Source: Blastocystis sp. Blastoise (taxonomy: Eukaryota > Protista > Bigyra: Opalinata). Taken from it: 64,000 bases of DNA. This document shows positions 366-47,200 of the stretch, piece by piece. Below the pieces are notes generated by a model. It was not told the DNA's origin, searched no databases, and saw only the letters and a list, made by a program, of their open reading frames with translations. The first letter of the stretch is position 1. Each line of letters begins with the position of its first letter. The position numbers and the translations under genes are program-made. The DNA is taken from contig JBBPEB010000013.1 in assembly GCA_039096225.1 (NCBI GenBank), forward strand, positions 1,674,001 through 1,738,000. Reading direction: 5' to 3'.

Positions 366-1136
366 ATGGATTCAGAAAGTAAACAACAAAAGCGTAGTCT
401 AGAACATCCAGAACCAGTCTCTAAACATACAAAGAATACTGCTGATTTCATTTTTAACGATAAAAGTAAAGTGAGCGTTGAATTATCTTTTTTGAAGAGA
501 TATCCAACGTCGTTATTATCGAAAGCACTTGAGAATTCTGCTAATTATTTACAAGATGAAGATGCTTACTATATAGATTCTTCAAGATTCTCTGTTGATT
601 CTTTGATTTTATTAATGGAAGGAAAAATTACACTTGATTCTTTACCCATGAATGAAATCTGTGAAATAAAAAAAGCTGCTAATTATTTCTTTGTAAATGA
701 TATACGTGATGTTAAGGCTAAAATAGAAGTTACTCTCCAATTATTTTTAAGTGCTTTTATGAAGCAGAACGGTTGTTCAATGTAACTATATATTTTATTA
801 TAATATAAAAATATCTTTATAGAGAAGATAAACAACGAAATGGTGAAAATAAGCAAACATTACTTATAAATGGTATATATGATAATAAATATATTTATAA
901 TATTTTTTTTAGGTATACTAACTAAGGAAAGAAATGTCAAGTTTCTGGAATATTCACGATTATTTGAAATAATGAACATTAAAAGAGTAGTAATAAAATG
1001 TATGTTTATTATTATTATTGAAATATAGAAATATTATTATAATATAGTTAATTTTTCAGAAGATATTCCTTATGAATATATATATCCATCAAATCTACAT
1101 GAACTATTTCCACAATTAGAAGAATATGAACTTAAA

Positions 1137-1206
<70 letters not shown>

Positions 1207-3771
1207 CCGGTAATAAAATTAATTAAGGAGATATGTATACGTCATTCTGATCCTCATTATATATTATTATATAAAGAATATAAACGACAATATTACAAAG
1301 AATGTTATCCTGAAGCTTATAATGCTTATATTTCTACTCATCCAGATATAGAATCATTCTCTTTATATTGTAATAAAATTCGATTACATTCACGAAGAAA
1401 CAATGCGAATAATCATCAAGAAGAAAATATTATTCATCATGAAATAATACCTATTAATATTGATGAAGAAATACAGAATGAAAAAATTACCAAGAAACTT
1501 AATTTATATACAGATTCAATTTATGAATATATTCCAATTAGTCATGAACAAAAATTAGTGAAAAAAAGCAATGAAACTATTATTTCTAAAGAAGAATTTA
1601 GTTCTTATACTTTTTCTTTTTGTGACGAAGATGGACGTATATAATATTTATAATATATTTTATTATATTTTTTAAATATAGATCTGAATACTTCGCATCC
1701 AACAATATCGTATTTATAAACTTATTTAAATTTTTTAGTGTTATATATATATATTTATAGATTTATTGTAATACCCTATAATATCTAAATTATTATTTAT
1801 ATTATATATATAGCCGTGGAAGATGTGAACCTCCTTGTATTCAAATCGATAATTATCTACTCAAATTACCTGTTTTTAAACAATTAAGAAATTGTCTGGA
1901 CTGTATATTATATTTATATATATATATATATATATATAGTTGGCAGCTATTATAAATTAGAAACAGTTTCCCCTTTTTTCAAATCACTAAGTGAAGGAAT
2001 ATTTGATAATATACAGACAATGGCACTAAATAATTGTATATCCATCGTTTAATTTTATTTAACAATATATATATATATAGTTATTAACTGTAGTATGTAT
2101 CCTGAGTATATACAATTATTTAAAGATATTATAACAACTCATGTATTTCCAAATATTAAAACTTTAAAGATACGTAGTATATATATGTATAATAGTTAAT
2201 AATATATATATATATACTATAGTATGTGATCAGCATGACCCTGAAATACAATTATACAAAGAAATACTTCCATTAATAACAAGAAATAATTTCCCTAAAT
2301 TATCTATATATACTATTAATTATAGTACAAATTTTAATCTTCTTGAAGATCATTTTGGAATCATTTCTTTATTAACGCCTACTTCTTTAATTGAATTAGT
2401 AGATATTATATATCTATCTAATGGATATAAAACTACTATTCAATTAAATGAGTCTTATGTTAATACTATGTGTCAAGTTAAACAATATCATAAATTTAAG
2501 ATTCAAGGTATATTGATTTATATATATATATATTAATTATTTATAAATAACATATTTATATAGTTGATTTTGATATTAATAATTACAATGAATTATGGAA
2601 AAAGTTATTTGATTCTGAAGTTATCAATTTTAATACATTAACTATTAACTGTATATGTTATGAAATATTCTTTATAAATATAATATATATTATATATAGT
2701 AAGTAAAATAGACCCGCTGATTCATGATTATTCATTTGATATAAGTCATTGCTCTATAAAGTGTCTTAATATAGGTATATATATATATATTCTTTTTGAA
2801 ATAGCTTTATTTCTTATTTATATAATTTTATTAAAATAATTTATTATATATATAGATATTAATAATGATTCAATAGATAAGATGAAAGATATTCAAAATC
2901 TTCTACAAACTATCAATACTACAAATTTGGAAGAAATCTATTTTCATTGTATGAATATATATATTAACACTGGTATTGTAATCTATATATTTATAATTTA
3001 TAGTTGAACATTATGATACTGATACTTTTACAGAATTCTTCAATGCATTATTACATATTCTACATAATAAATTTTATAATAATGTCACAAAAGTTGATAT
3101 TAGTATAATTATTAATTATTTACTTTTGTGTTTAAATGTTTATTATAACAATAGGTGTTAAATATAATTCAAACATAGGTTTCCTTAATGAGAATCAAAT
3201 GATTGAAATGAATAGAATTCTATTAGAATTCTTCTCTTTATTTACAGATAATATCCGATCTTTATATATACGTATATAAATACTTATATATGATTATTTA
3301 TATATAATAACAATTATTTGTACAGCGACATATCTATTAAATTATTTATGTTTAACAAATGAATGCATGAATTTACCTTTATGGGCTAATTTAAAAGAAA
3401 TGAAAATATATATGCGTATATATATTATTTATATTATATATATTATATATATTATAAACTATTTATATATAAATATAGGTGATGAAACTCATAATTATCC
3501 AGATGATGCTGAAAAATATCCATTTAAAATGTTTGATAATATATCTGAATTAATTAACAATAAAAAATTAATTCATCTTCAATCAGTTACTATGGTTTGT
3601 GATTATATATTTTATTGTATATATGTATAAATGATATTTTATTTTTAATAAATGTTCTTTATAGCACATGACCCAGAGACATATGAATATGCTTATCCCT
3701 TTATTCAAACAATTACGAATTGTTCTTTAGATTCTCTTCCTTGTTTAAAACAATTCCTTGTAGATGATGGT

Positions 3772-3806
<35 letters not shown>

Positions 3807-4337
3807 CTTATCTATTTATTATTATAATATAAAGCCCTCGACAAAATGAATCTTTTTAATGTATTTCCTTCTCTTTATTTTGATCATCATATGATATGTA
3901 ATACGATTAAAATGAACTATGAAATCATTTATTATTATGATGCTTTTCTTGACTATTCTGAATATATATATAAGGAACTACAAAAACCATATACAAAAGG
4001 AATCACTAATTTATATTTACGTATATATATTATTATTATTATTATTATCATTTAAATAATGTTTACTATATACTTATGTTTCTATATATATAGGCATAGT
4101 AGACAACCTTTTTTTGATGAAATTTGTGGATTTAATAATAAATGATTCATTTCCTTATTTGAACAAATTAACTATTAAAATTGAAAGTATATATATATAT
4201 ATTAATATAATGGTTAATATATTGTTTTAGGTGACACAGATAAGATAGATATAAATGATTATATGCCATTATTGAATAATTATAAAGAAGAAACCAATAA
4301 TAATTTAGATATATCTATTTATATACCTAGTAAGTAA
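366..4337 (+). CDS. BTB/POZ (KCTD/T1-like) + LRR-like repeat protein, subfamily A; 20 introns by manual splicing
   Basis: ATG at 366. Exon 1 has a BTB_2-like pattern (FIFNDKSKVSVELSFLKRYPTSLL...YYID). Manual splicing keeps one open frame to TAA at 4335-4337 (...DISIYIPSK*). Downstream exons end in LxxLxI-type strands (FPNIKTLKI, NLEEIYF, NLKEMKI, FPYLNKLTI). One donor (1138) reads GA rather than GT. Confidence 0.75.
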
Positions 4338-6677: not shown

Positions 6678-9600
6678 TTATTTGAATTCATAATCTACAT
6701 GATTTTCTTTTATAAATGACGAATCCTTTAATTGTTGTTTATATATATTAATTTGCTCAGTTGAAATATCACAACCTATGTAATACATTACTAAAATAAA
6801 TAACTACGTATATACAGTGAAAGGAAATATATTTCAATTTAGGAATTTTTCCAATAGAAATAAAATTGATAAGTTTTGATAATTGGTTTTCTTCATAAAT
6901 ATCTATGAAAAATGAAATTTCATATAAAAATATAATTAATAATTTACATATTTTTAAATATTTTAATTTTTGAGTTTTATTTTCATTTATACAATCAAAT
7001 AAAGTCTCTATATCAAATTGACTCATCGTTTCATCTACATAAAATTATATTTTTTTAATAAGATATATATACTATATACCTTTTGTACCAATAATTGTAT
7101 TCATAAATGCATTACTATCATATTTAAATCGAAAGATTGAATGATTAGGATCATAAACATAATCATTATCTGAATAGCGACAACCAGTATCTATAGAATA
7201 ACACTAATATAAATATGAGTAGAATCATTTTATTTATGACATACTATCTAATTGGACAATACTTGAGGATGGAAAGTTATTATTATTCATATATGTACAA
7301 AATGTCTTAAAAAAAGAAATCCACCATTTATTATCATTTTTATCTATATACAAAATATTTAATAGAAATAATTAATATATAAAATTATTATTAATATATA
7401 TACAAATCTTGATAGATTTTAGTTTAGGGAAATTATTTGTAGTATATAGTTTGCAAAAATTATCATCTGGTATATCTCTAATTCCTAAATTAATATTTAT
7501 AAATATTAGGATGAAATATATAATATACTGTGATTAAAATAGTATATATATTCTATATATACTTAGAATTAATGTAGTTGTATTATGGAAACAACCTTTA
7601 GGAATTAATCGATTTAGAAAAGTCATAGTACAATCTAATATAAAGATAAAATTAATAAAAAAGTTATCATTACATATAATAATAATAAATATAAATAATT
7701 ACATTCTATATTAACCCTAGAAGCCTTAGAAATTAGTTTAATCATAATATTTTCATATGCACTTAAATATTCAGATGATAAGTCTTCTTCAATATGTACT
7801 ATATATATATATACTAATATAATATAATATACAGTCGATTTTTAATTCACGAATAATTTTAAACTTATTATCATTAAAAAGAGTTGATATCCATGTTAAG
7901 TATTCTATACTTATAGCATCAGCAACTATAGATATTATAAATAGAATAATAATATATACAACCATAATAAATATACATGAAATAGTTAACTTATTTAAAT
8001 GTTCTACTATATTATTCTTTAAAAATCTTTCTAATAAATTTCTGTTATCAATTTCATCTGGATCATCATCTATAAATGAATAAATGAATAAATATTTTTA
8101 TTCTATATCAACAATATATATTTTATATAGATTAATAAATACTTATAAATGTTATATCTAAACTATCAATATTTTGCTTATATTTTTCAAAAGAATCTAA
8201 TTTCTTTATATTTTCAAAACGAGAAGAATAAACTGTATAGAATAGTATATATATAATATAAAATATTTAAATAATATTTTTAAGAATAAAGAATATTTCA
8301 TACTTGAAAGATTATCAAATGAAATAAGATTCTTTTCAAACAATTCACTTAAATGAGGAAAATAACAAATATAATTATCTATAGCAAAAATAAATAAATG
8401 AAACTAATTAAGCATAGTATTATAATCTAAAATGTATATATATATGTACTCCATCCACATTCATCATCAATTATATTAATATGAATTGAATGAGTATAAG
8501 CTATTTTATATAAAAGAAGAGATATTTTCTCTTTCTGATCATAATCAATATTGTTAATACGAATAGTATCAATCATAGATATTAAATCAGCAGGAAATAA
8601 AGACTTAAAATTACCAGTATCTAGAATAAGAATAGTTGTATATTATTAATATACAAATATACTTATTTCAATGTCATAATTAATAATATGTAATTTTGGG
8701 AAACATTCTTTCTTTATTAAAGACAATTTGAATAATTCTATATATATATGATGGTATATACATATATATGTACGGTCATTATTATTATTATTATCATCAT
8801 CATCATCATTATCATCATCGTCATTATCATTATCATTATTATCATCATCATCATCATCATCATCATTATCATCATCATTGTCATCATCATTATCATCATC
8901 ATTGTATAGGAGTTCAGTAACATTTGGAAATACATGAGTTGTCATTATTGTTTTAAATAGATTATCACCAATTTCACAAGCCAATTCTCTAACTATATAG
9001 AATTATAATAATAGAAACAATATTAATAATAACTTTATAAAATAATACTCCAGTTAACATCTAATGTAGTTAAAGAATCGAAAACACCTTCTTCTAATAA
9101 TTTCATACAAATCACAGAATTATTTTGAGAAACAAGATCTAAAATAAATTATTATATTTTAAATATATTTATTTACATTCATTTAAAATGATTTCTGAAA
9201 TAAATAAATGCGAAGTAAGAAGTAATAATTGAGATATACCAATTTTAGAAGATACATTATTAATACTATTAAATATATATATATATAAATTCATGACAAT
9301 TCATTAAAAAAATAGAATTATATACCAAAATGTTTTATTTTTTGTTTTTTCTATATAATAATAATAAAATAAATGAATTTATTGTATATATTTACCATTA
9401 TATTGAATACTGACTTCATCATTTAATGTATACTTATCTTCTGTTTTACTTATTTCAACATTTGAATAATCATTTGTATATATAGCTTCATTAACTATAT
9501 TTTTATATAATTTACGTAACTGGTTGCTTGGTCTAATGCTATTATAGGACTCAATCAATTTATAAGAATAATAAAGTTTATTTAGATCTAAAGAAGAAAT

Positions 9601-10021: not shown

Positions 10022-10089
<68 letters not shown>

Positions 10090-11496: not shown

Positions 11497-14400
11497 ATGT
11501 TTGAAGAAAAGATGGAAAAAACAAATTGTCAAGAAAAGCAAAGTATTCTTTCTATTCATACATACTAATCATAAATATATAATTTTTAAAGTATTATTTA
11601 TATTACAGGATGAATCAACAATCACAATTTCAAATTCTCTTCTACAAAAATATCCTAATTCCATGTTTTCTTCGGTATCTATGAATACTAATGATTTCAT
11701 AGAAGAAGGGAGATCTTATTACATTGATTTTTCATCTTTATCAATACATAAAATGATCCCATTTATGGAGAATGCAAAATTTCTTGATATTCTGCCTTTA
11801 AAAGATGTAATCTCAATTCATTCAGATATACATTATTTTTTTGGAGATGAATCCTATGAGGATAAGATAAAAATATATACATTTCTTGGGATTCTTTGAG
11901 TATTTTTATTGTAAATAATAATTGTGAACAGTATTTTATTTTATAAATATTTATAGAATAAATGAAAGTGATGAAATGAAAATAATACGATTTCAACTCA
12001 TTATTTATGGTATATTTATTTTATTATTATTATATATATGAATATATAGATATCATAACAGAGGAGAGAAATCAATTATTCTGTCAATATTCTCCATTAT
12101 TTGATTTCTTTAATATTACAATTGTTACTTTAAAATGTATATTTATATAATATATATTTATTATATATATATAGTTGATTTCTCTAAAGTTATCTCTTAT
12201 GAATATATATATTCTTCCAATTTACATGAAGTATTCCCAAAACTAGAAATGCTTTTTATAGAACGTATTTTATAATTATTTACATATATATATATTTGAA
12301 TTTATTTTATATAGCTTCCTATTATTCTCAAAGAAAAGAGATATATATACCTCCTTCTGATCCTCATTATACTCTATTATATAAAGAATATAAACGACAA
12401 TATTATGAAACTTATTTTCCAAAGAAATATTCTAATTATAGAAGATCAAGAACAGATAAAGAAAACGATTATATATATAACAATTTAATTCATATATATT
12501 CAAAAGAAAAGAAAAAAAAATTTGAATAAAAAAGAAAATGATATTTCTCACAAAAATGTAGATAAAGAAATAAATGAAGAAAACAATGAAATAAAACCAG
12601 ATCTATTTGTTATACTTTCATGCTATTCCCGTGATTATAATACATAACAAATGGAGTTCGAGAAGAATAATTTATTATTATATAATAATAAATATATTTC
12701 TTATATGAAATTTATATTTATCCAAGATGGAGGTATATATATATATATATATTATAGAATTTATATATATAGAACGAGATATACAACATCCAATTGTAGA
12801 GTATATAATCATATTTTATTGTTTTTGTACTCTATATAATTGAATAAATTATTTTATTATTAGAATATATTTATAATATATAAATATGAATAGGCTATCG
12901 TTATCTTCGTGTTCAACGATAGTCTTCTATTTATTCATTTTCCAATAATGAAGCATATTAAACAACTAGTTACTATTCGTATATATGTAATAACTATTAA
13001 ATATATATATATTAGAGAATCCTAGAGTGAAGATTCAATTCGATATTCCTCCATTATTAATAACAATTAGAGATGGATTAGTAGATACTATTATTATATT
13101 CCACATATTCAATTGTAATATATATAATATATAATATTTATTATTATTATATAGTTATTCGACCAGGATTATATCCTGAATATATTCAATTATTTAAAAA
13201 TATTATTACTACTCATGTATTTCCTAATGTAACCGCATTAAAAATAACATGTATATATATAATATATTTCAATATATTATATAAATAATATTTATAGATT
13301 ATTCCTATGATTTATATATACCTCTTTTACAAGTGATATTGCAATTAATAACAAGAAATCATTTTCCAAAGTTGCATATATATGATATCAGTGATATTAT
13401 TCAAAATGATACTTATATATATAAAGAGAATTATAAATTTGTTCTATTTTCTGAATCTATAATACAACTAATGGATACTATAATTTATGATAAAGATATA
13501 TTTTCTGATATCTTAGAGAATGTTGTGGTGTATCCAGAAATATCAGAAGCTATATTGAATACTAATAATACTAATTATTTTACTATTCAAGGTATACATA
13601 AATGGTATTATGAATTATTATTATACTATATATATATAGGTTCATTTTTTTTAAATGAATATGATGTTGTGTGGAATTAGTTAATGAATTCTAAAGTTAT
13701 ATTCTTTAATAATCTAATTATTGATTGTACATATATATATTATATCATTATTATTATTATTTCTATATTCTTTTAGTATATGAGATGAAATATACTAGAT
13801 TTGATATTTCTCAAATAAATCTAAAAAAGTGTATAGTTAAATCATTTGTTCTTAGTATATATATATTTGTATATATCTATTTAATATAATAGATGCGAAT
13901 TCATTTCAGTATAAGATATTAAATAAATTGAGGAATTGCATGAAAGATATAAATTATAATGAGCTTCAAACACTTTTTATTAACTGTATTTGTTTTTTTT
14001 TTATTTTCTATTTATTCTATTTATTATTCGAATTAATTATGTAATTTTTAGTAAATCCAGATGAAGATGAAGAGTATGAATATGATAGTGATTATGATTA
14101 TGATGAAGATGATAGTCACGATGAAAATGAAAATATTAATGTGAATCAATATATTTATGAATATTTCTCATTTTCATCTGTTGGAAACTATAAAAACGTG
14201 ACTACTTTGTCAATAGGTATGATTATGTATATCTTTATATCTATATATATAGATGATATAACGTTCTATTCTATTCATGGTTATATAAAAAACAAAATAA
14301 AAGTTGAAACCATACAAATGTTATATCATTTCTTCTCCTTGTTCTCTAATAATCTTACTAGAATAGAATTAACTTGTATATCAATTTAAATATTATATAT

Positions 14401-15377
14401 ATATACAAATAGATTGTTTCTTGGTATCCTATGTATTCAATGATTGCTTATCTCTACCTTTACTTGAAAATATCAATTATTTTAAAATATCAATTTGTAT
14501 GAATATAATATATATATTAGTCAATTATATATATAGTTAAGAAAAATGAATTGAATGATTTATTGAGGAATATCTACTCCTTATTTAAGAATAATAAATT
14601 GAAAAGACTTCAAATATTGGAAATTAGTTATATTTCTAGTATGTTTAATAGTTATATTGATAATATAAATATATATAGAAGATAACGATAGTTTTGATGA
14701 ATTATTTACATATATTATGCTATTTAAAGAAGACTATATTAAAACTCCTTCGTACTTCAAACAGATAATACTTAATATTCAACATATATTTTTGTATCAT
14801 TAATATATTTATATATCTTATATTCATTTTCTATTTAATTATTTAGTTGTAATTATTAGTTATATATATCCTTTTATTGTTAAAAATATATTCTTATTTT
14901 TATATATATTAATTATATTACTATTAGAATCTCAGAATGAATATACTATTCAAAATATATTGGAATCATTTCCTTCTTTTTCATTTTCTTTTCATAATTC
15001 AATTCAATGTATATCTATGAATAAAATAATGAAGAAATATAAAGATATATATATTATATATTGTAAATATATATATAATCAATTAGAGATGGAATATACT
15101 CAGTTAATTGTTCAATTAGATTTATGTATATATATAGTATTATTCCACATTATTCATTATATATAGTTATAGTAGATAATCCTTATATAAAGAATATTAT
15201 AAACTTAATTTCAAAGAATTCTTATCCTTATTTAAGAATACTTTACTTATATAACTCATGTATATATTTATATAGTATATGATGTTTAAATCTATAGATA
15301 TAGAGTTTGATTATAAATCTATTTTAGAAGATTATAAAAAGAAATATAATCCACAACTATCAATTATATATAAATGA
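11497..15377 (+). pseudogene. BTB-LRR subfamily A pseudogene
   Basis: Collinear with 366-4337 (SDPHY.LLYKEYKRQYY, TTHVFPN, ITRN.FPKL). It carries a frameshift near 11890, a frameshift in the A-run near 12515, an in-frame TAA at ~12645, an apparent 2-nt deletion near 12917 (GTT CAA --C GAT versus ATT CAA ATC GAT) and an in-frame TAG at 13678-13680. Terminal TGA at 15375-15377. Confidence 0.75.
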
Positions 15378-15696: not shown

Positions 15697-17273
15697 TTAA
15701 GCTCTTCCCCAGACTTCATAATCTTCTACTGTAAAATCATTTCTAGAATTAGCATTAGCAGTATTCACAAATAATGAATGTTTTTGAGGAGTATTCACAG
15801 TAGTAAATGATTTTGAATTAGTCAATGCATTATTATTATTAGTATGGCAATTATCACCTATATATATATCACTGCCACCACCAAATACAGGGCCATAAGA
15901 AGAACGACAATATATACCTCTACCTATGCCATTATGTAGATATTGAGTAGGAGGAATATCATGTTCATTACTTAATGTAAAGAGAAATTCTTTAGAAGGA
16001 GATTTTTCACCTATAGAAAAGAATACGAAATAAACATATTTAAATGATAATATATACAGTTACTTGTTCTAGATTCCCAACTTTGATCTGTATATCCTCC
16101 AAATATATTAATATGATTATTATGACCTATATGTTTAATAAGAGTAACTGTTTCTCCTTTATTGTCACAATATTTATGGAATTCACTTGCTAAAAAATTA
16201 TGTTCACTTGCTCTATATATATAATGATATAATAAAATAATAATAACATACCTAAATAATAATTTCCATTTCTTTCCTTTACCAAGCCAATTCACTAATG
16301 GTTTTGTAAGTTCTTCATCAATAATAGTTGATTGTTTGAACCATCCCGGAATCATTGCTTCTTTCGCAGCTTCTCTTCCTTTTTCACCAAATAATTCAAT
16401 CATTTCTTTCTCTAATAATTCTTTATTAATATCACTTATCTTATCTTCTTCTATATCTATAGTTCCATTATTTATATATCCAGTAATATATTCAATATAT
16501 TCATATTGTTTATTCACATATAAACTATTTTCTATAGAATTATAATTAATAAATCCATTATCATAATTCTTAACATAATTATTCCATAATCCATTCTTTA
16601 TCAAATATTCTTTAATAGTATCATTCTTGTTTCCATTTATAATCAAAGAAACTTCATCTCCTTCTTCATATTTCTTTTTCTTTGTATCTCTTCTTGCTCT
16701 ACAATCTATTAATTCTAAAGGAATAGGTAAACCACAATATTCAAATAAATCTAATATTTTTAATTGTTCTTCATAACAAAAAGAATCAAAATCTACTTTC
16801 TTTCCATTCAAATAATTAACTAAATAATAAACAGCGGCATCATTTCCAGGATAATCAAGATATATAGATCCATCATTTGTCCTAAGTTCTTCACTACATT
16901 GTTCTTCAATAAAAGAACCTTTCAAAGAATCTAAAACAGATTTCGATATTTGAAATATAGGACCATTATTGGTAAATCTAATGGAATCCATATTATCATC
17001 ACATTTATCATCCATATTGACATTCATATCTTCATTATTCTTATCTTCATAAACACAATTCTTTTCAAATTCTTTTTTTCCGCTTTTATTATTAATATAG
17101 CCATCTCCAATATGTTTTATAAGTCTATTAATCGATATTCTAGAATGTATTCCAAGATTCATTACTGATCCAAATACATTAACTACATCTTTCATCAATT
17201 CTTCATACACATTGATATCCTCCTTCAATCTATTGAATTTATCAATATCAAATAACACCTTTTCTTTCACCAT
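15697..17273 (-). CDS. BTB (KCTD-like, with a possible second degenerate copy) + TLDc domain protein; 2 introns
   Basis: TLDc motifs WKLLFRASEH.F.ASEFHKYCDNKG.TVTLIK, IFGGYT, FLFTL, YGPVFGGGSDIYI and FTVEDYEVWG. BTB-like IRFTNNGPIFQIS...IYLD. Introns at 16213-16251 and ~16011-16063. ATG at 17273, TAA at 15697-15699. Confidence 0.85.
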
Positions 17274-17344
17274 TTTCAACAAATAAAGTAATATATCGAA
17301 TTAAAAATTTCAAAAAATTTCTCTTTGAAAATTTTGTTTTGAGA

Positions 17345-28970: not shown

Positions 28971-29046
<76 letters not shown>

Positions 29047-32261: not shown

Positions 32262-35200
32262 TTACACAGATTTTAATACTTGAGTATACTCATTAATAAG
32301 AATATCATCAAACATATCTTCCATTTTTTGTCGAGTAGCACTACTAGTACCATTACTTTGAGAATCTACTAAAAAGTCTTCATCAAATATATAATTATTA
32401 CCTTCAACTCTTCTACCATCAAAAACATTATTATCAATTTCTTCTCTTAATTTATTTGCACTTAATAATATTTTATTACTTTTAATAGGCATAAAATGTA
32501 CTTTAACATTACGTTTAACAATAATATCACATATTTTATGATATTGTTTATTCAAATCAATTCCTCTATATGGATATACTAATCTACAATCTTTTACTAA
32601 ATTATGCATAGGATCTCCACCACATAATAATAATATATGAGTACAACCAGGTAATTTTTCAATTTCTTTTAATGCTTCTATTAAACCACCATTCACATCT
32701 TTGCAATTTGAACAACAACCTTCACAGAAACCACCACCTGTTTTTGTTTCACTACTTAAAAAGTCATCAGAGAAATCATTTGGTTTACTCATTCCACTTG
32801 AAACAATACGTACGTAATCACCATAATTACTATATTGAACAACTTGATAACGAATAGAAGCATTATTCTTTCCTAAAATTTCATTACGTCTTTTATCTAA
32901 TTTCTTTAATACATTGCCAAAGAATTGTTTTGTACTATCATAATACTGATGTTGATTACCAGATGTGCATATAACAATAGATACAACTAAATTTGTAGGT
33001 GATTTTATATCTCTTTTTTCACATTCTTCTGTCTTTATATTTTGATCTGTAAAAGAAGACATATCTACTTTATTATAATAATCAGGTATTTGTTCATTAC
33101 TAAGATCAGCTGCATGAGATTCATTACTTTCATTCAAATAATCATCAAAATTAAGTGACCAAATAACTGCATTACTTATCCAACGAGCAGTACCATCACT
33201 TGACCAATCACTATATAACTTACTAGCTGCTGTATCTATTACGATTCTACCATAATTCTGATATGCATCTTTTATCATTACAGCAGCATGACCATTTTGT
33301 TCTCTTGCAAATGTTTTAAAACCACAATTTACTAATTCATCTTCATTAATATTTGCTAATGTTACACCTTCAAATATTTTATTTAAACCATAATTTATAG
33401 GTAATCTACATTCTTTATTAAATAAACTTCTACCAATAGGAACAAATTGACCATAACCTGGATCTTTATCATCATCTACTTCATCTATCTTCTTCTCATA
33501 AATCCAACCACGTCCATCGATCTTCTCTTCAGTATCACATAATTCACTTATATGATAAGGACCATCTTCATAATTAAAGAATTTACAAGCTTCAAAATCT
33601 AATGGAGAATTCTCTAACATAAACATAATACCACCACGATGAGCATGGAATATATGTAAACATTTTATAAAACTATTCAAATAATTAAAATCACCTTGAT
33701 GTTCTGGATCTCCTAAAACACCATCACCAGGACTACATGTAATAACTACACTTCTATATTTACCTGATCTTAATCGATCCATAGCATCAAAATAATCATA
33801 TACTATATCTATTTTAAATCCTTTAACTTTTAATTTAGCTACAGGTCCTTTCTTTAAATTATCAACAGTAACATCAGGATCAACTTGATTTCCTTCTTCA
33901 TCTATATTATTAGGTCTAGCAGTATATAAAACAACAAATAATACATTAAATTGATCAAAAGCACCATCTCTACCTAAATCATCACTTGAATTATCACCAT
34001 TTTCATCATCATCTACTCCATCACCATTATTATTCTTCTTATTAGAATTCATATTTAAAAACTTAGCACGTCGTTGATATTCACCAAATTCATCAATAAC
34101 CTTCTTTATATCTGCTGGATGGAAAACATCATTGAATTTATTATTTAATAAATTTTCATAATATATAGTATCACACATATAATTACATATAGTATTAGGA
34201 TTAGTAGTAGGTGTATGCATATTCTCTAAAGCAGTAGGAAGTTGATGTATATCACTACACCATATAAAAGAAGGGAAAATATTCTCATAGTCTACTATAC
34301 TATATCCAATACCTATTCCTATAAAAGAAGTTTCACTACTTATAATTACATTCTTAATTTCTTTACGAGCTATTTCACAAGAAATACCATCAGTAAATAC
34401 AAATTCCATACTTGAATAAGGACGACTATTACATACAGAAGTAGCTTGCTTTATTACTTGATCTATACATGTAGAAGGAGTAGGAGAAGAGAAATGTTGG
34501 AATAAAGAAGAAAGAATTGTATATGTCCAAATTTCATAAGATTGTAAACCTGTTCCAATACAATAACATTTATCTTTTGCTATCCATATATCCACAGCTG
34601 ATACAGATAATTCACTTAAACATCTTATAAATAATAATATAGTATGAATTGAATGACGAATATTTAATATATTAAAAGAAGAACATTTACAATCTATTAT
34701 TATACTAATAGAATAAGCACGAATCTTACCTCCTGACTTCTTCTTAAATAATTTACCATTACCTGTTTTAGTAATTAAGAAATTAATATAATTTCTTAAA
34801 TGAATTGATGTACCTGTAACAGAAGCAATCCAACAAGTAGCCTTATTTGGAGGAAGAACACAATTATTCATAGAATCATATAGTAATTCTTTACTAATAA
34901 TACTACTCACTTGATTTAATACTAATGTATTTCCTCCATTAGGAACATGTTCTAAATCTGTTTGAGCAACAGAAGGAAGAATAATAGTTTCTCCTGTTTT
35001 TTGGAATAAACTAACTACATAAGGCATATCATAACATTTGTCAAGTTCTGATAAATGAGATATCTTATCATCCTTTATATCTTGTAGAGGAATAGATAAT
35101 ATAGATAATAAATCGATTTCTTTAGAATTCACACTATTTTGACTTGGATATACTACTTCTAATATATCTTTATTTGATTCAAGTAATTCAGATGAATAAA

Positions 35201-38200
35201 ACATATTTAACAATGAATCAGAAAGTGGTTGAGAACGTAAAGAAGCTATGTTTGATACATTCATCATATTCTCTTTAAAATTGTTCTTTAATTGATCATT
35301 CATTTCATTCAAAAGTACTTCAGGAAGTCTTTCATCTTGTATTAAACCATCAGATTGTATATGGAATAAAAATAAATGTTGAAGATGATTTGTAATGAAA
35401 CTAGTAATTTCAGGTAAATCACTTAATAATTGTTCAGAATAACCATCAGATAATATAAAGAATGATTGACTTAGAAGATCTTCGGATGGCTGACTAAAAG
35501 CAAATAAATCTAATGGTGTTGAAGGAATCTTTTCTACTTTTTCTAAATCATAAATAATAGAAATCTTTTCATATAAATTATCTTTTGTTGGTATTAATTT
35601 AAATGCTTGTGAACGACCTCCTGTACAATATAGAGAAGTTGGTATACCTAAACAATCACAAATAAGTAATAATAAACAACCTATTGTACTTCTTAATCTA
35701 GATTTGTTCACTTTATGACTAAAATTCACATCACATATCAAATTCACTCGAGGAATATATTTATTCTCTCTCTTTTCACTCCTACGTATACTATTCACAT
35801 AATATGATAATATACCTTTATAATTAACCAATATAAAATCTATAAGATTTTGATTTCTATTAATAGCTTCTATATTAATTTGTTTCAAACGATCTTCATT
35901 TGATGATGTTATTTTAACTAAATCTAATATATTCTTTCGAGACATTACATCTTTAAATAAATTAGATAAAGACATAGATCTAAACTCTTGTAAAATCTTT
36001 TTAATATCATTTCTTTTAATTTCAAATTGTTTACGATCTTCTTCTTGTTTTTGTTGTTCTTCAGGATTTAAATCAGCATCTATAGAAATCACATGTGTAG
36101 CAGCTGACGCTATATTCTTAGCTTGATGTAAGATATCTTCAATATCATTTGGATTAATATTACCACCACTAATCACAGGATTTGAAGACTTTGGTTGTGA
36201 ATCTGATTTAGAATCTGTTACCTTCTTTTCATATTTAAATTCTTTTGTATATCTATTTAAAATATTCTCTATCGAAGAAGATTCATTCATTTGATAAATA
36301 GAATCTTTACAATTAAACCATACTAATTTATATATATTATAAAATACACATAAACTCTTTTCAGCATAATAATAAATAGTTGAGAAATAATTATCTTTAT
36401 GACTTACTATATACTTTAATAAGGAATAAATCTTATTTATATCATCACTATGAGTAGAGTCAAATAAACAATAAGGAGATTGTTGAATAGCATATACATA
36501 TCGAGCAATATTCTTATCATTGAAATTCTTTAATAATGAACTACAAGTAGATTCTAATTGAATACTTTGGGTTATTCTATTATCTTCTGCTTTTGGTTCT
36601 TCAAATATATTTATAATACCATTAGAATCAATGTAAAACTCATTATATCGACAATTTATATTCATATTATAACGAATTAGATATTTAGTATTAAATACAT
36701 ATCTATTCTCTTTATTTCCTGAACGATAATAAAAAGTCTTACCATTCATAATAAACGATATACTTGAACCAGCTACATTAAAGAACTTTGATCCATCTTT
36801 ATGACATTCACAAGAACAATTCTCTTTTGTATATAAATATGAGATTTGACGTTCTACTGGAGCAATACACTTAATGACTGTGTCTTTATGTTGTTTGCTT
36901 CCATTTTTTTGATCTATATATTGAACACGTAAGACTAATGTGAACTCAAGTTTATCTTTTTTATCTATATCATATTCATCAGAAAATTGTATTTTTATTC
37001 CAGAAGAAACATTTTCAATAAGAATAGAACTATCATTACATTTACATATATATTCATATTTCATAGGATTTAGTATAGGTATTAATAATGTTGGTTTATT
37101 ATATGAATAAATATAAGTAGGTAAATGTAAAACATTATTATTATTCTCACTAGCTACAATTATTTGAGGAATAGATCTTAAAGATATTATATTAATACAA
37201 TTCTCAAATTTTGGACTCTTTGTATATTTTAAGTAATTCTCAGATCCTTCATCAATATTATATCGATCTACAAATACACGAGAACTTAATAAATGCTTAT
37301 TTGTAGCATTAATAGTTTCTTCTATTGTTTTAAGTTCTTTTTCCATTCCAAGCTTAGTTTTATATTTCGCATCATATTCCTTTACAATATTATTAATACG
37401 AATACTTATGTCTCGAAGATTCCTTACATACCTATCATTATTACTTAAATTAGGTACAGTATATGTATTTAATATATTTATTTCATCTGCATCTGTATAA
37501 TATAAATCTTCTTTATTATAATGTCTACCTTTATCAGAATTCAAATAAGAATAATCATTAGCTTGAGGTTCAGGATCCATAGAATAACAAGGTATTTCTA
37601 CAGATTTACAATCAGATCTAAAGTAAAAAGGTAATGTACAACAAGAAGAAGTAAAAGAAATATCATAACGATCATTAATATCATTAGTTGTATCATATTT
37701 ATAAAGCAGAATAGTATTTTCTTTTCGTTCACTAAAATCAGAATAAGATTGTTCACGATAAAATAATGTTTTTTCAATAACAGAAAATTGTTCAATTCTA
37801 AATGATCTAGAAATATTATATAATACATGGCTTTCTTTCATTATATTACATAAAGAATCTAAGAGATAATTACATAATAATAATTGTTCATCTTCAAAAG
37901 AATCATGTCTAAATAAGTCAGGAAGACTAACATAACGATATTCAATAGTTATATCATTCTCAATTCTATTTCTATTAATAATAACATCATACGTAGAAAA
38001 AGGAAGAGGAATAAATGAAGAATACATAGTCTTCTTTGATGATGGTTTTGATTCAATTTTAAGTGAATGAGGTTTAAAAGTAATTGGTGCAGGTTTTCCT
38101 TGATTATTGACTAATTGGAACTCAATAGGAATATCTCTACAAGTAGAAGGATATGTAATAAAAGCTACTTTAATAAATTGATTAGAAATAGGCTTTTCCT

Positions 38201-41200
38201 TTAAGAAATAACGAGATGAACGACTATCAATTAATTCTTGAGCTTTTTCTTGTAATTCTTTTGGTATGAAATAACGTATAGTATTAATAGAATTAATAAA
38301 TGCATTCCAACTATAATGATATAATTGTGTTACATACCATGATCGCATACTCTGTTTCTTCAAAATAAATTCTTTATTAATATCATAATTCTTATTAATT
38401 TCTATTAAAACTAAAGGAATATTACTATTAAATTGATTTACATTTTGATCATATTGAGATTTCAAATCAGCACATTCAACATCTATATTTTGTAATTTTT
38501 TATTTATTTCATTATTATTAGCATATAAAGTATCTAATTTGCCAGTTTTTTGTTCTAATTGTTCTATTTTATTAAATATATCATTAATTGAAGTTTTTCC
38601 TGAATCAGACATACTTTCAATAGCATCTTTAGCAAATTGTGAATAGGAACTACGAACAAGAATTTCAATTAATAATGTAGACACAGGTGTATAGAATGCA
38701 GGGAATAATAATTGATATTTATCACGAATATTTAATTTAGAATCAATAATATATTGATCAAACGGTTCTATCTCTTGATTATCCTTATTCTTTAATATTC
38801 CATAATAAATACATAAATCATTTGATGGAATTATCATATTATGATGATGATGCAAGAATCGAATATAATTAATATTATTAATAGTACATTTATCATTTAT
38901 ATCTAATTCACATTGAATACTATAATCTTTTGGTAATGATTTAATAGAATTAACATAATAACAATTCAATAATTGTTCATTAGGAGGTTCAATGCAACTT
39001 AATAATTCACAAGGATAAGATAATATAAGAACAGGATAATAATCATAAAGTTGAACTTGTATACTCATTGTACTAAATAATGTTTTAAATAGTTCTTCAA
39101 TTGTTGATATATCTGATATTTCTGTATTAGTACTACCATATAAACCATAATGGCAGCAATTCAATAATGCAATGCGTAATTGTTCAACCTTGACTTCTTT
39201 ATGAATATATAAATCCTTTGTATGAATTATTTCTAATAATTGTGGAGATAAAATAATATATTGTGCATAACCACAATATATATTCATAAAGAAATTAATA
39301 ATTATTTTGATATCTTTAATGCAATCAGTAATAAATAATATATTACTAGCCACATCTTGATTATTCATATTTATATAAGGTAATATTTCAGGTGTATTCA
39401 TAAGAATATGAACAGGATTCAATTCTGTTTGTTTTATATCAACCATGAAATGACTTAATCGTATATATTCTTTATAATAAGGCATTTCAATCTTCTTATA
39501 GTCTACATATATATCCATCGATTTATCAGTATTCATTAATAAATCTATCTTCTCTTCTATATTAGGATCATCTTTCGAAATTAATTGTTTAATTGATTCT
39601 TGCATACTTTTTGGTACACTATTAATAACATCATCAAGTAAAGAATCACCTGTATCCATATTTGATTCTCTTATACTACGAATATCTTCAAATTTACTTT
39701 GAGCATTTTTTATTTCTCTATCTAATTCTTCAAATAAAGGCATATATTGTTTTATTCTATTCTGATGACATAAAAGAGAATTAGAAACTTCAATAGAAAT
39801 CTGATATAATTCTTTTGCTTTTGAATTATCTTTAATAACCTCTTGATAATAGCCATCTAATTCTTCACATTTATTCTTTATATCAAATAATTCTTTTAAA
39901 AATAAATCTATATTCTCATCAGCAACTTCTTCAAGCTTTAAATCTAAAGCTTTTAAAACATTATGAAATTCTTTAAAAGATATTCTAGAAAGAAAACTTT
40001 TATAACTATCAGTAACATAAGCAAAATAAAAACGATCAATCTCATTAGATATTTCAAAATATTTAAATGGGTTAGAAGGAGAAGAATATGTATTTATGGT
40101 TTCATCAATAGGTATCGACATAATTGGCTCATAATATTTATCACTAAATTTTGACCACCTTAATAAATATTTATATTCTTTTTCATATTCAGATAATATA
40201 CAAGAAGTCAAACCACGTTTTGCAGATAAATGTTCACATATATAATTAAGTGGATAACATAATATACTACGTATCCATAATCGTAAAGAATTCTTTATTA
40301 TTTGTATATCTTCATTTGAAAAGATTTGAATATTTTGTTTAAGACATTCTACAATTAATGGACCAAATTTCTTTTCATTCTCAGGAGTATATCTATTTTG
40401 AATCATATTAATAAAGTCATTTTTAAATTCATTATCCATTTCTATATTCTTAAGTTGTCTATCTCTTGGATTATATTGTAAAGAATTTGAGAATTCTATT
40501 GCGTTAATAGCTTCAATAGATTCATCTGAATTTAATATACGAATTAATTTTCTTGTTGATAATCCTTTTATTTCACTATTATTATTATTATCTATACTTT
40601 TAGGAATATAATCACCAATTGGTTTATTAGAATTATTGTTTAAATCACATAATTCACATATATTTTTATATGTAGATAATGATTCTGCATATAATAATAT
40701 ACATCTACTTTGAAGAGGTGCAGGTACAGATACAATAGAATTTGATGATAATGTTAATATAATACGGAAATCAGGATGTATAGGTATAATACATTCATTA
40801 TTACTATCAGAATCTTCAGAATCTGATTTAACTTTATATAATAAAGGATTTATTATATTTTCAATAACATTTAATGTAGGTTGTTCTTCTAAAAGTGAAT
40901 TCAAACGTTCTAAAACATCTCCTGAAGCAAATTGAATACCATCAATATTAATCCAATAACCTTTTTCCATAGCTGTTAATAAAGGTCCTTTTCGGAAGAC
41001 TAAAATACTATTCTTATTATTGTTATTTATATTATTAATATCTTCTTCTGGATTACGAGGTTCCATTCTACCAATAAGAACTGATGAATTACTTTCATTA
41101 TTAAGAGGAACAACAAGTAATTGTTTACCCATTATTTTAGCCATATTTGTAAGTACATGTGTTTTTCCTGAAGGAGATGGACCATAAATTAATATACCTC

Positions 41201-44200
41201 GTTTACTAGAATAAGCAATAGATAATTGATATAATAATCTCATTTCTGAATTTGTTAAAGATAAAAGAGATGGGGATTTATCAATACATTCAATAGAAGT
41301 CACAAATGTACTTTGTAATTGTAAATAACTTTTATTAGTATATGAATCTACATAATAAGAACGTTGAATAATACCTGATAAATTTAAACCAAGTGATTTC
41401 TCTAGAGACTCACGATCTTCAGGTAAATATTTACATACAATCGTAAGCCATAAAGCAGCTTCTACAGGAATAGAATAATTCATGTGCCTAGATTGATCTA
41501 TTAAGCATTTTCCTTTTAAAACATCACGTAATGAGAAATTGACACGTGTCTGAGAACTACTATAAATAGCATTAGCAATCAGTGCCTTTATACGTGTGTC
41601 TAAATTCTTCTTATAGGATTCTGTACGACTAAAAGATTTATCAGATCTTTTATCACTTAAAACACATTCATAAAGAATAATAGTACTTATTCTTGTCAAT
41701 TCAAATACTTTAAATTCTATATTACGGAAATAAAAACTCTTATCAATAATAGATTTAGGTAAAACACCACGACTATTCGACATAACAGCAGGATTCTCAC
41801 AGATAACTATCAATAATCGTGGTAATTTATTAATGACTCTATCTCCTGGGATATAAAAACTACCTCTTTTACTAGCTTGTGTAATTAAAGTAGATATAGT
41901 ATCTAATAATTCAGGAGAAGCAAGATTTAATTCATCTAATAATAATCCTATTGTATATTCACCTTTATATAATGCATATTTCTTATCATTATTCTTATAT
42001 TTATCAATAACATTTGAATCATTAGGATCAAAAATATAACTACCTTTATCATCCATAACTCTATATTTATCTTCACCTTTTAATAAGAAACTTAATTCAC
42101 TATCTTTAAATTGAATACCACCATTAGAAGTAGGAGATACAGAACCAAATACATTTCCAATATCTATACTTTGAGCAAAATTCTGACGAATATAAGGAAT
42201 ATTTAATAATTCAAATATACGAATAGCTAAATAGGACTTACCAATATCTGGTGCTCCTTCTAATATAATTGGATAATAATCAATATCTGATTTATTCGGT
42301 TTAGGATCTCCTGTATTCTTTGTTAATAAAATAGATATTAATATATGTAAAGTAGTAAGAGATTCTGTTAATGGCTGAAAACCAGAAAGTATTTTTATTT
42401 TTTGAATTGTTTGGATACAAATACCAGAACCATTTCTAAAGACTTTTTCTAAATATTTAGTTGGGTTTTCATCGGATTTAATATCCTCTGAATAAGTAAA
42501 TAATTTTATAATAGAATCACTACATTGACATGATTTCATTAATTGAATACGTTCTTCTTTTGTCCCTGAAATATATTTTAAATAGAAATAAGCATCTTGA
42601 TAAGAATTCTTAAAGAATGGAGCAAGAGCATCAATTTTCTTTAAGAATATTAAAGATTCTTTTGCAAATATAGAATCAACTTGAGAGATCCACGGAATAA
42701 TCTTCATCTTTTCAGATAAATTATAATCAGAACAAGGTAAATAAATAAAATAATTACGAAGAGCAGTTTTAGTAAAGTTTTCTTCTTCAACAGTAGCAAC
42801 AAATCGACAATTCTGAAGATTTACTTGATATCCACTATCAGATTCATGTAATAAGAAAGAATAGCCACTTAAATAACTATCAAATAAAGAACTTAATCGA
42901 GGAATAACATTATCATTCAATAATTCAAAATGCTTTAATAATAAAGCTTTCTCTTTAAATATACCTAAAGTAATTTGACCAGGTTTAAAAATCATACTTG
43001 TATCTGATTTTTCTGATAAACATCGTTCAATATCGTTAATCCATTCTTTTAATGCTATATACTTATCATCTCCTGAATGAATATCAATATTTAATTTTGT
43101 AATTTCTGCTTTTATTCTTTCATATAATGATTGAATATCTGTCTTACTACAAACAGTAGATAATCCAGTTAAATAATCACATTCTAAAGATCTTGATAAT
43201 TCAATAGTATCCATATTATTCTGTAGTATATCTATAAATTGATCTTTTGATTCAGATCCACCAATAAGAATAGGAGGAATTGTACTTAAACTTTGAAGAA
43301 TAAGGAGACGGAATAAAGAAGAAATACACCAATGACAAGTAGATAAATTAATACTATCAGGATAGTATACTTGTAAAATAGAATTTGTTATTGTATTTTG
43401 TTTTGTTCCTTGAACAATTTCATAATTTACAAATTTCTTAATTTTATCTTTCATTTTTTCAATTTCAATATCTGAAGGTTTATAATCATCATTATGTGTT
43501 TTTAAACAATGAGTAGCAATAGCAATTAAAAATGGAGAATTCATATGTAGAAAAGAAGAAGGTTGATATAAACATACGATACCAGCCATATATTCATTAG
43601 ATTGATCAAAAGAGACATTACGACAATAACGTTGATAGATTTCATAATATATTAACAACTGTTGAATGGAAATAGATTCATAACGATATAATCGACATAA
43701 AAGAGGATGATGAAGAATTAATTCTATTTCTGATTGTGTATATAAATCTACATATACTCTTTGAATATAAGAAGGTAAATCATGATGAATCTTATTTTGT
43801 TGATAAGATTTAAATACATATATTAATCTGAAATTACTAGAAATATGATATTCTTTACCTAAATAAACAACAGATGTTGCTAAAGGATCAATAAATTGTT
43901 GAATAGATTCAATTAATTCTTCAGATAAATAATGAGCATTCTCTAATATTAATATAGTTCCTTTTTCTAAAGCTTCTAATAAAGGTCCTCGTTTAAATCC
44001 TGTACCTTGAGAAACTGATTCTTTTGAAGAACTTGAAGAAAATGTATAACTACCTATTAATTGACTTATATCTGTATCTGGAGTTAAGAAAACTGTTTTA
44101 TAACGTTTTATTAATCCAGTATTCTTTAGTACATTCAAAAGAAGATGTGTTTTACCTGTAGATTCTAATCCAATTAAACTAGTTGTTCTATGTTCACAAA

Positions 44201-47200
44201 TAGAACTAAATAATTCATTACATTTATCACAACGAGTAGAAGGAATATATTGATCTAATATTGATAAATGTTTACCTTCTGAAGTACAATAATCTTTAAT
44301 TAATTGTACTTTCTGTTCAAATGATAATTCACACATTTCATATATGAAATCTAAACTAATATAATATTTCTTCTTATTAAAAAAGTTAGATTGAGAATCG
44401 ATGAATTGTTTCATATTTATATATAAATTCTTTTCATTTTCATCATTTATATTCTGAATTACACTTGTAGAAATCTTATTAAAATAATCTTTTGGCTCTT
44501 TATATAATTTATAACATTTTTCATTAAGCATATCATCACTAATACGTAAATGTATATATCGGTTATTAAGAGCAGGAGAGAAATGATTAAGATCATTAAC
44601 AGAACAAGTAGCAATAATACGGAATAATGGATCTACAATAAGATCTCCATTACATTGTCGTTCATCAAAACGAACACTAATAGGCTCAATATTATTATTA
44701 CTAGCATCTAATGTATGATATTCTACTTCTAATAAATTATTTAATCTTTCAAGAGAATTAGAATTCATTAATCCTATATTTTGTATAACACATATATTAC
44801 CTTCATCAGCAGCTTTTAATAATTCTGAATCTACCCATTGAGGTATATATTCATGACTCTTAATATCTTCTTCTAATTTAGAAGAACCTATTAAATTCTC
44901 AGCTGTAATACCTTTAGAACAATATAAAGTTCTATATACACTAGAATAATGTAATTTAATACCATTCTTCTTTTTATTGATTTGACCATATATTTGTTGA
45001 CGATGATATAAGAATGCATATACATATTTACGAGCAACATATTCATCAGAAGCACATACTATTACATGACTACCACTATTTAAAGCAATATCTAATTGTT
45101 TACCTATATATTGGAATACAATAGGATCTAAAGGTTCACCAGGATAATCTAAGCCTCTTTCAGCATCACTGAATCCATCTGAATTCTTTGATCTTGTAGA
45201 TTGATCGTTTTGAAGAAGTTGTTCCATTAATTGTTTACGATTAAATCCTTGTGTATAATGAGTATTATATACTATTGGCCATATATCTTGAGAATTTTCT
45301 TTTAATCTCATCATAGAAATAGCTCTATTAGCATCTCGAATAGTATAATACTTATTAATAATTCGTTTTCCAGTATCAAGAACAGCTTCATTATGTATTT
45401 GTAATAATTGACTTTCAAATTCATCATTTCCAATATTCTTTTTCTCAATAAATTGTTGAATTTCTTTTGGAGATATAGGAGGAAATAATTCTTCATTTAA
45501 TACTCTGAAGTAATCACGAATATCTGTATTTAAACTATCTCTTTTATATTCAGATCCAGCAGGATTTTGCGTAGCTATAATACGGAAATAAGGATTCATT
45601 TCTCTTATTTCATATTGTTCCATATTATCAATAAAGATTTGTTTAGAATCTAAGAAAGATAAGATTGATTGAACAATAGATTGAGGAGCTAAAGATAATT
45701 CATCTAATAATAATATACCACCATGAATAAATGCTTCTGTGAATGCACCAGATTTAAAGACAAAAGTACTATGTTTATTATTTGTTTGTAAAGTAATATC
45801 ACCAATTAAATCTCCAGGAGAAGAAGTTTGAGAGAAATTATAACGAATAACACGAATACCACTTCTTTTACTTACATATTCTACACTATAAGTTTTACCA
45901 CTAGATGTTTCTCCTTCAATTAATAATGGAATATTATGTTGAATAGCTTGTTCAATATGATAAACACGTTGTTCAGCTTCAGGAGTTGAAATAAATGTAT
46001 TCTTTCGACTCATAAGATTAATAGATCGATAAGGATATATAGTATAAGAGTGATTATTTATAATGTAATTTAATGTATTCTCTATGGAATGAACAATCAC
46101 ATAATCAGCAGTAATTCTTAATCTACCTACTCCTTCTATAAATATACTTAATCCTTTATAATGAGGTTCTTTCTTTCCATTTTCATCACTAGTATAATGA
46201 ACAGGATTGTTAGGACGAATACAGAAGAAATTAATAGTTTTATTATTTAGATAATTCATATCTGATTCTATATTTTTAAGTAAAGGAAGATAGAAATAAA
46301 CTTCATTTTCAGTTGATTGATAACTAAAATTAACATAATCACCAAGAGATAATGTATCTAATCCATTATATAAAGCACAAGGAAGAGATAGAATAGAAGT
46401 ACGTTTATCATTATTTTGAGTTGATGGTTCTTCATGTAATGTGTGTAATATAAGGTTATTAGGAGTAATAAGTGCAGGAGATTGAGTATTTAAATCAAAA
46501 GCAAGATAGCAAGGTGCATAAGGGGTATATCCATAAGGAGAAGGAGGATTCACTTTAGTAGAGAAATAAGAAGAAGGATCTGCAGGACGATGAGGTATAG
46601 TGTTATCTATATATATAGATATATAATGAGTAATAATTTGAATAATAAAAATTATATAACATTAATTAATTATATATATATTTATATATACGAAGTTTAT
46701 ATTCTTGATCTTCAAAAGATTCAAGATAAGATTCATCATATATTAATTTATTTCCATTAAACTATATAGATAATATATAATATTATATATATATTTATAG
46801 AGAATAAATATACTGAGAAACGTTGTAGTTCTTCAGGAGTAGCATGATCATTAATATATCCTTTATATAAATAAGCAAAGAATCGCGGATATTCTTGGCT
46901 TTTCATATCCAGTTCTTTACAATTAATAGAAAAACTCTGTAATGATATAAGTTTAGTATAAAGTTCAGGAAGACGGAAAAACTCACATAATTCATCCTTA
47001 TAACAAGATACTATATATTATATATATAGGTATATATAGAGATATATATACCTTTTAGACACATTTTAGAAGGAGTAATAACTAAAGTATTATCTTTATA
47101 GAAACAAGTATATTCAAGACTATTCGTAGAACGATCTATATATATATATATATTATATTTATATTTATTTTCTTTATTTTTTGTTACATTTGTTACATTT

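Follow-up and report, generated by a model that had tools for sequence, protein, structure and literature searches.

Why should a gene be divided into exons that nearly all begin and end in the same phase and that each encode about one repeat of the protein, and is such an arrangement still used to exchange the repeats? The question is raised by a gene at positions 366–4337 (forward strand; hereafter g1) of a 64,000-nucleotide stretch of the genome of Blastocystis sp. Blastoise (contig JBBPEB010000013.1, positions 1,674,001–1,738,000), which we refer to as a whole as the window. A preliminary description, made from the sequence alone, had read g1 and three relatives in the window as BTB–leucine-rich repeat (BTB-LRR) genes built from symmetric, shuffling-ready phase-1 exons, and had proposed an expanded family of variable substrate or pathogen sensors feeding a cullin-3 ligase. 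In our analysis the BTB domain, the solenoid, the large family and the family-specific phase-1 exons stand and the shuffling falls: that term should be replaced by an inherited scaffold combined with gene conversion, and the cullin-3 link and the immune role are speculative. Taken as a whole, our best explanation, a lineage-specific BTB-LRR family with an inherited exon scaffold that is diversified by gene conversion and serves as a target-binding adaptor, has in our estimation a probability of about 0.5.

Splicing of g1 with a dynamic-programming model, corrected against paralogues and then verified base by base, gives 21 exons and 20 introns and an open coding sequence of 2862 nucleotides (nt) that ends with TAA at 4335–4337. 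In order, the intron phases are 2, 1, 1, 1, 1, 2 and then 1 fourteen times; that is, 18 of the 20 introns are phase 1 and two are phase 2, and from position 1903 onward all 14 are phase 1. This independent splice model thereby reproduces the tally of the preliminary description. The public protein of the gene (WA158_004114, NCBI, Blastocystis sp. 'Blastoise'; P0044) has 864 amino acids (aa) and contains 15 of the 20 junction peptides exactly. Introns are 37–104 nt long, and 19 of the 20 have GT..AG borders, mostly in the form GTATAT..TATAG. The remaining one, intron 4 (1138–1204, phase 1), is a (TA)n run read from the sequence, with GA in place of GT at the donor, where the paralogues L001 (93% identical to g1) and L003 read GTATAT. 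The (TA)n run adjoins this GA donor, and the public model omits the two exons just upstream. Across the family, (TA)n microsatellites occupy introns that are in part homologous and in part not (1138–1204, 10025–10088 and 28973–29046), and short GTATAT..TATAG introns are abundant in the window, the GC content of which is 16–27%.

The phase-1 excess extends to the family. In 23 gene models of the family, three from the window and 20 from fetched loci, phase 1 accounts for 377 of 456 introns and class 1-1 for 317 of 433 internal exons, the sizes of which peak at 29–33 aa; the introns in other phases are mostly two conserved phase-2 introns together with spurious 3′ extensions from the splice model. 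Within the window, the rule noted for the other members holds in g2 (10586–6678, reverse strand; 20 of 21 introns) and g4 (30719–26997, reverse strand; 18 of 19), and the third relative, g3 (11497–15377, forward strand), turned out to be a degenerate copy. As background, we tallied frame-consistent intron chains in the non-family genes of the window with our own intron finder, and obtained 27, 19 and 14 introns in phases 0, 1 and 2 (n = 60; ~45/32/23%), an ordinary eukaryotic distribution. Relative to this background, the excess is specific to the family within the window (Fisher test, p = 5e-6 for g1 and p = 9e-13 for the three intact window genes). When run unfiltered, the finder gives uniform phases outside the family, with many antisense false positives, and the method thus has no built-in preference for phase 1.

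The all-phase-1 part of g1 is formed by exons 7–21 (1814–4337, forward strand), which encode the LRR solenoid. Exons 7–9 lie at 1814–1902, 1940–2035 and 2081–2176; exon 10, at 2223–2507, holds three repeats; exons 11–15 follow at 2564–2650, 2700–2774, 2856–2948, 3004–3102 and 3155–3271, and exons 16–21 at 3326–3415, 3479–3616, 3665–3772, 3835–4020, 4094–4186 and 4231–4337. An LxxLxI-type pattern is visible at the exon ends of the family, and a phmmer search of an LRR exon against solved structures returned nothing meaningful. For fold prediction, the LRR parts of the 33 proteins retrieved by a profile of the three-repeat exon (see below) were aligned in 33 rows. AlphaFold2 modelled residues 391–922 of the paralogue P0013 (532 aa) as 17 alternating strand–helix units, with a mean predicted local distance difference test score (pLDDT) of 85.1 and a predicted template-modelling score of 0.85. 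Foldseek with this model returned 56 PDB matches at E <= 1e-3, and, among the matches listed, all 37 at this threshold are LRR proteins, including NLRP5/SCMC, rice D3, TIR1, COI1, MAX2, NLRC4, Dia2 and ribonuclease inhibitor. Mapped onto the model, each short exon of this paralogue corresponds to one loop–helix–loop–strand unit and ends in or just past the strand, which confirms on a predicted structure the earlier remark that exons stop right after a beta-strand. By this prediction, the tail of the family is an alpha/beta LRR solenoid with one repeat per short exon, and the fold check that could have spoken against a solenoid came out confidently in its favour. The P0013 model supersedes an earlier AlphaFold2 model of a 156-aa exon of the paralogue L015 (pLDDT 71), which had no Foldseek match; VIA-align gave that model Z <= 6.4, and its whole-model matches were mostly LRR proteins (Dia2, TLR2, ribonuclease inhibitor and a Bacteroides LRR-like protein), together with two non-LRR proteins.

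Upstream of the solenoid, exon 1 (366–781, forward strand) encodes an N-terminal tail and a BTB_2 (T1/KCTD-type POZ) domain and is followed by a phase-2 intron (782–822), a junction also present in the public model. The exons of g1 were searched singly, and paralogues from the databases stood in for its spliced product. Exon 1 matches Pfam BTB_2 (PF02214) with E = 2.5e-4 and 21.8 bits, the curated cut-off being 21.4; among 19 aligned family exons, 12 match BTB_2 at E <= 0.1 (best 5.7e-5), and L015 scores 22.6 bits. As judged by these profile scores, the N-terminal domain is a divergent BTB_2 member, above the curated cut-off, on matches that are marginal but recurrent, and to this extent the KCTD-type domain of the preliminary description holds. 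The nearest ESM clusters of exon 1 all belong to the BTB/POZ clan, which we take as a lead only. Pfam scans of family exons and members detected no domain besides BTB_2, and hence no NACHT or NB-ARC NTPase domain; no F-box was found in any member scanned.

Between the BTB domain and the solenoid, exons 2–4 (823–872, 913–999 and 1048–1137, forward strand) were placed by paralogue comparison and are separated by phase-1 introns at 873–912 and 1000–1047. Exon 4 carries the family signature 'NFSEDIPYEYIYPSNLHELFP..'. Exon 5 (1205–1636) encodes a 143-aa linker domain that is specific to the family ('..DPHYxxLYKEYKRQYY..') and matches no Pfam family. Exon 6 (1682–1709) is a 28-nt micro-exon, flanked by a phase-1 intron (1637–1681) and a phase-2 intron (1710–1813); it is kept at 25–28 nt in paralogues and is also present in the public model.

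How large is the family, and how far does it extend? Genome searches give at least 132 matches for the BTB exon, some of them containing in-frame stops, 50 for the three-repeat exon, which lie without exception ~1.8 kb downstream of a BTB match, and at least 105 for the 29-aa signature exon. These matches bear out the expanded family that had been proposed, which comprises roughly 70–105 loci, clustered on many contigs. When a profile of the three-repeat exon was searched against 1.84 billion protein representatives, 33 proteins of ~700–950 aa were retrieved; 31 of these 33 were traced, all 31 to Blastocystis sp. Blastoise, and a word-based search with a full-length member gave 32 matches, every one from the same organism. 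Among the proteins searched, the family is restricted to the Blastocystis sp. Blastoise genome. Its proteins are annotated in NCBI as 'hypothetical protein WA158_...', and the family is unnamed. The genome paper nowhere mentions BTB or LRR (Genome Res 2025, PMC12129017), and our literature search returned no paper for the term 'BTB-LRR' or for Blastocystis together with BTB and leucine-rich repeat.

The symmetric exons could be in current use, being duplicated, swapped or alternatively spliced to give combinatorial receptors, as has been proposed for the brown-algal LRR-ROCO genes. Every LRR exon would lend itself to this, being of class 1-1 and removable in frame. The order of the exons argues otherwise: it is strictly collinear, with 0 violations in 1087 reciprocal-best exon comparisons across 212 gene pairs, and no two exons within a gene are similar at E < 1e-3, so that no exon duplication was seen and the duplication and swapping foreseen in the preliminary description find no trace in these genes. 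In this they are unlike the LRR-ROCO genes of Ectocarpus, in which exons measure 72 nt, even recent duplicates have scrambled exon orders, and exons have been duplicated locally (PMC3341825). The family thus shares with that system one LRR per symmetric exon, and neither the scrambled order nor the local duplication.

Exon boundaries do differ between paralogues. The three-repeat exon of g1 corresponds to several shorter exons in g2 and g4, and L015 (G000 C3:1698800–1705300) has fused exons of 156 aa and 327 aa, within which the internal paralogue boundaries are all in frame. About nine phase-1 introns have been lost from L015, mostly toward the 3′ end (exons 2174–2644 and 3038–4019), a bias expected if introns were removed via cDNA. 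Together, the split three-repeat exon in g2 and g4 and the losses in L015 fit an ancestral state of one intron per repeat, followed by losses.

Incongruent exon genealogies also seem, at first, to favour exchange of exons. The incongruence is real (site-pattern heterogeneity among g1, L003 and L004/L005, chi2 = 134, 16 degrees of freedom, p = 1e-20): L003 pairs with L005 in the BTB exon (52 informative sites vs 7 and 6), whereas g1 pairs with L004 in the exon at 2081–2176 (15 vs 0 and 4) and with L003 in the exon at 2223–2507 (42 vs 24 and 15). However, in sliding windows, the mosaic tracts measure ~100–250 nt, run through introns and end inside exons. Because they cross introns and stop within exons, the tracts point to short-tract homologous gene conversion between paralogues, and since such conversion preserves the frame whatever the intron phase, the incongruence is independent of the symmetric-exon design. 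Ordinary gene conversion, for which exon symmetry is not needed, is thus the source of the incongruent exon trees that the preliminary description had anticipated as a sign of shuffling.

Exon skipping is the remaining use to which symmetric exons might be put. The public model WA158_004114 leaves out exons 3, 4 and 16, with direct 2–5 and 15–17 exon junctions, and stays in frame because the introns concerned are all phase 1. In several paralogues, too, the public models are without these three types of exon, namely the exon 3 type (28 aa), the 'LNYLxLTNE..LWxNL' exon (29 aa) and the penultimate repeat (30 aa). The public annotation (BRAKER3, StringTie and Mikado) was guided by poly(A) RNA-seq and tuned toward RNA-seq-supported introns, and the recurrence of the omissions in models of this kind favours genuine skipping. 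The omitted exons may be real isoforms or, equally, artefacts of annotating a multi-copy family; the predicted skipping accordingly has its in-frame forms in the public models, and these forms may be spurious. With collinear order, dissimilar exons and tracts that ignore exon borders on the other side, we consider it rather improbable that the symmetric exons now serve to build combinatorial receptors.

In the explanation that we prefer, that of an inherited scaffold overlaid by gene conversion, the family would be specific to one tortoise Blastocystis lineage and would encode intracellular proteins of ~950 aa, in which a divergent BTB_2 (POZ) domain is followed by a family-only 170-aa linker and by an LRR solenoid of ~17–20 repeats, of the ribonuclease-inhibitor/F-box-LRR structural class. 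The phase-1, one-repeat-per-exon layout would be the footprint of early growth of the solenoid, in which a unit made up of an exon and its intron was duplicated in tandem; the layout would since have passed to every copy, and introns would only have been lost, as in the intron-poor L015. At present the family changes through whole-gene duplication and decay, through short-tract gene conversion, which makes mosaics of the LRR arrays of paralogues, and possibly through splicing that skips single-repeat exons in frame. The BTB domain would oligomerise and/or dock to a cullin-RING ligase, and the LRR surface would bind variable protein targets. This adaptor reading is drawn by analogy with the F-box-LRR, MATH-BTB and BTB adaptor families. 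Of the elements of the explanation, gene structure, folds, copy number, mosaicism and restriction to this genome are results of the analysis, and growth by exon duplication, target binding and any connection with ubiquitin are inferences.

Among the families behind this analogy, the F-box/LRR receptors of Skp1–cullin–F-box ligases (FBXL; TIR1, COI1, D3/MAX2; Dia2) likewise place a small N-terminal adaptor of the POZ/Skp1 world before a long alpha/beta LRR solenoid. Foldseek places them among the best matches of the family tail, and the ESM neighbours are FBXL15-type LRR clusters, again a lead only. The family differs from them in having BTB_2 where the F-box would be, in its longer repeats (~31 aa), which Pfam LRR models miss, and in its ~100 copies in one protist. 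With KCTD and other T1-type BTB proteins, some of which are cullin-3 adaptors, the family shares the BTB_2 match of its 12 of 19 members; but its BTB scores are marginal, no solved KCTD chain was found by sequence, and an LRR array stands where KCTDs have short C-terminal domains. The MATH-BTB and F-box expansions of nematodes and plants combine a ligase-docking domain with a fast-evolving binding domain, and are marked by tandem clusters, pseudogenes and birth and death. The BTB-LRR family likewise shows tandem clusters, many pseudogenes and birth-and-death evolution, whereas its binding domain is an LRR array and no focus of selection was found on the binding surface.

Two further comparisons concern the exon layout. 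The Ectocarpus LRR-ROCO genes, which are candidate pathogen receptors, resemble the family in belonging to a stramenopile and in placing one LRR in each exon, the length of which is divisible by three; in contrast to them, the family has exons of 75–99 nt in strictly conserved order, no within-gene duplicates and no ROC-COR domain. The LRR exons of vertebrate NLR proteins and ribonuclease inhibitor share the same-phase rule. Their repeats belong to the same structural class and their modular exons can be skipped in frame, but those exons usually hold two repeats each, and the family is without the NACHT domain. For NLRP3, in-frame deletions are the expected outcome when exon skipping is induced (PMC11398476).

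Several observations weigh against our explanation and temper the probability that we give it. The BTB and LRR calls depend on a predicted fold and on sequence signals that are weak, because no Pfam LRR model matches (none on the 265-aa L015 exon at E <= 10 and none on ten full-length members at E <= 0.01) and because an hmmsearch of the BTB profile against solved structures returned nothing meaningful and no KCTD structure. The solenoid was predicted for the paralogue P0013, not for g1, and the background of intron phases comes from one window and from our own intron finder, not from annotation. As for the ligase, six-frame searches of the genome detect a single Pfam Cullin locus (G000 C15:290059–291924), which may be of another type than CUL3, and two F-box-like matches. 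Selection speaks in the same sense: dN/dS (the ratio of nonsynonymous to synonymous rates) is, by a crude method, not focused on exposed strands, unlike in a classical arms-race receptor, and the high dN/dS and the pseudogenes are also compatible with weak or no function of many copies.

Beside ~100 BTB-LRR genes in a 33-Mb genome, the cullin-RING system looks very small. If the single detectable cullin locus is taken at face value, the proteins might instead be oligomeric LRR scaffolds or sensors that work without a ubiquitin ligase, the T1-type BTB domain serving only to bring several LRR arcs together in tetramers or pentamers. The nearest Pfam family, BTB_2, is indeed of the tetramerisation type, and the best structural matches of the solenoid include the lattice-building LRRs of NLRP proteins; yet cullin-3 binding is common among BTB_2 (KCTD) proteins, and we regard a purely scaffolding role as unlikely. 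A complex prediction with four copies of the BTB domain (score 0.31, mark 0.32) speaks neither for nor against oligomerisation. At the other extreme, the ~100 genes might constitute an innate-immune-like intracellular recognition repertoire, in which LRRs varied by gene-conversion mosaicism and exon skipping would catch viral, bacterial or transposon proteins for the single cullin ligase; this we hold to be a long shot.

Selection among close paralogues bears on whether the copies function at all. By the Nei–Gojobori method, dN/dS is 0.4–0.9 throughout, whether in the BTB domain, the linker or the LRR part, and at exposed strand positions it is not above that of the helices. The variable-sensor reading of the preliminary description is therefore not borne out at this level: the elevation of dN/dS is general and shows no preference for exposed LRR positions. 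The method is crude at 19–23% GC, and the result thus neither proves nor excludes diversifying selection.

Raised dN/dS in every domain, the BTB domain included, would also be produced if most copies were functionless or nearly so, drifting in a selfish expansion by duplication and gene conversion within a genome now enlarged to 33 Mb. Signs of decay lend this some credit: some copies contain in-frame stops, g3 is degenerate, g1 itself has the GA donor, and in its twin L001 the linker exon is disrupted. Against such drift, most of the 23 modelled copies maintain open frames of ~900–1050 aa over at least 20 exons, the covariation within the family yields a high-confidence fold prediction, and the genes are present in the poly(A) RNA-seq-guided annotation. 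Hydrophobic core positions, moreover, have the lowest dN/dS (0.15–0.19) in two of four divergent pairs, g1–L003 and L003–L004, but not in the other two, g1–L004 (0.72) and g2–g4 (0.45). On balance, we think a largely functionless family improbable, and retain the adaptor family with its inherited scaffold as the better account.

The paralogues in the window illustrate the states in which copies of the family occur. g2 has 22 exons, including an extra first exon of 12 aa. One of its LRR exons (8774–8992, reverse strand) contains an insertion of ~45 Asp/Asn residues ('DDDNDDDNDDD...') right after the strand, and L015 has a comparable (Ser-Thr-Asp)n run near its C-terminus (L015:3835–3960). g4, with 20 exons, is the sister of g2. 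In the degenerate g3, a stop at 11897–11899 interrupts the BTB exon, and another truncates the linker exon; the public annotation represents this copy by a 489-aa, LRR-only protein from its 3′ part (P0029, WA158_004116).

Other genes lie between and beyond the family members. On the reverse strand at 16011–17282, an open reading frame (ORF) of 423 aa combines a BTB-like stretch ('..DGSIYLDYPGNDAAVYYLVNYLNGK..') with a downstream TLDc domain (Pfam TLD, E = 1.9e-8) into which an intron falls, and thus represents a second and distinct BTB architecture between the BTB-LRR genes. A midasin-like ORF of 4763 aa with four dynein-related AAA_5 modules runs uninterrupted along the reverse strand from 32262 to 46553; it is intron-free, at ~25% GC, amid an intron-dense region of 19% GC. 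At 53060–57400, also on the reverse strand, a 1446-aa ORF combines a putative Ig domain (He_PIG, E = 8.5e-13) with a cysteine-rich C-terminal part, which suggests a protein that is secreted or displayed at the cell surface.

No eukaryote is commoner in the vertebrate gut than Blastocystis, the genomes of which are usually called streamlined. Against this background, a lineage from the tortoise gut devotes ~1% of its genes to one unnamed family, in which two well-known modules, BTB and LRR, are joined in a combination without description in the literature that we searched. The family offers a clean natural case of how repeat proteins are built and diversified, with the ancestral one-repeat-per-exon scaffold intact and intron loss in progress, and it diversifies by gene conversion and not by the shuffling that its layout suggests. 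If its members do act as ligase adaptors or sensors, the theme of an expanded adaptor family as a means of defence, so far one of nematodes and plants, would come to include a stramenopile that lives as a gut symbiont.

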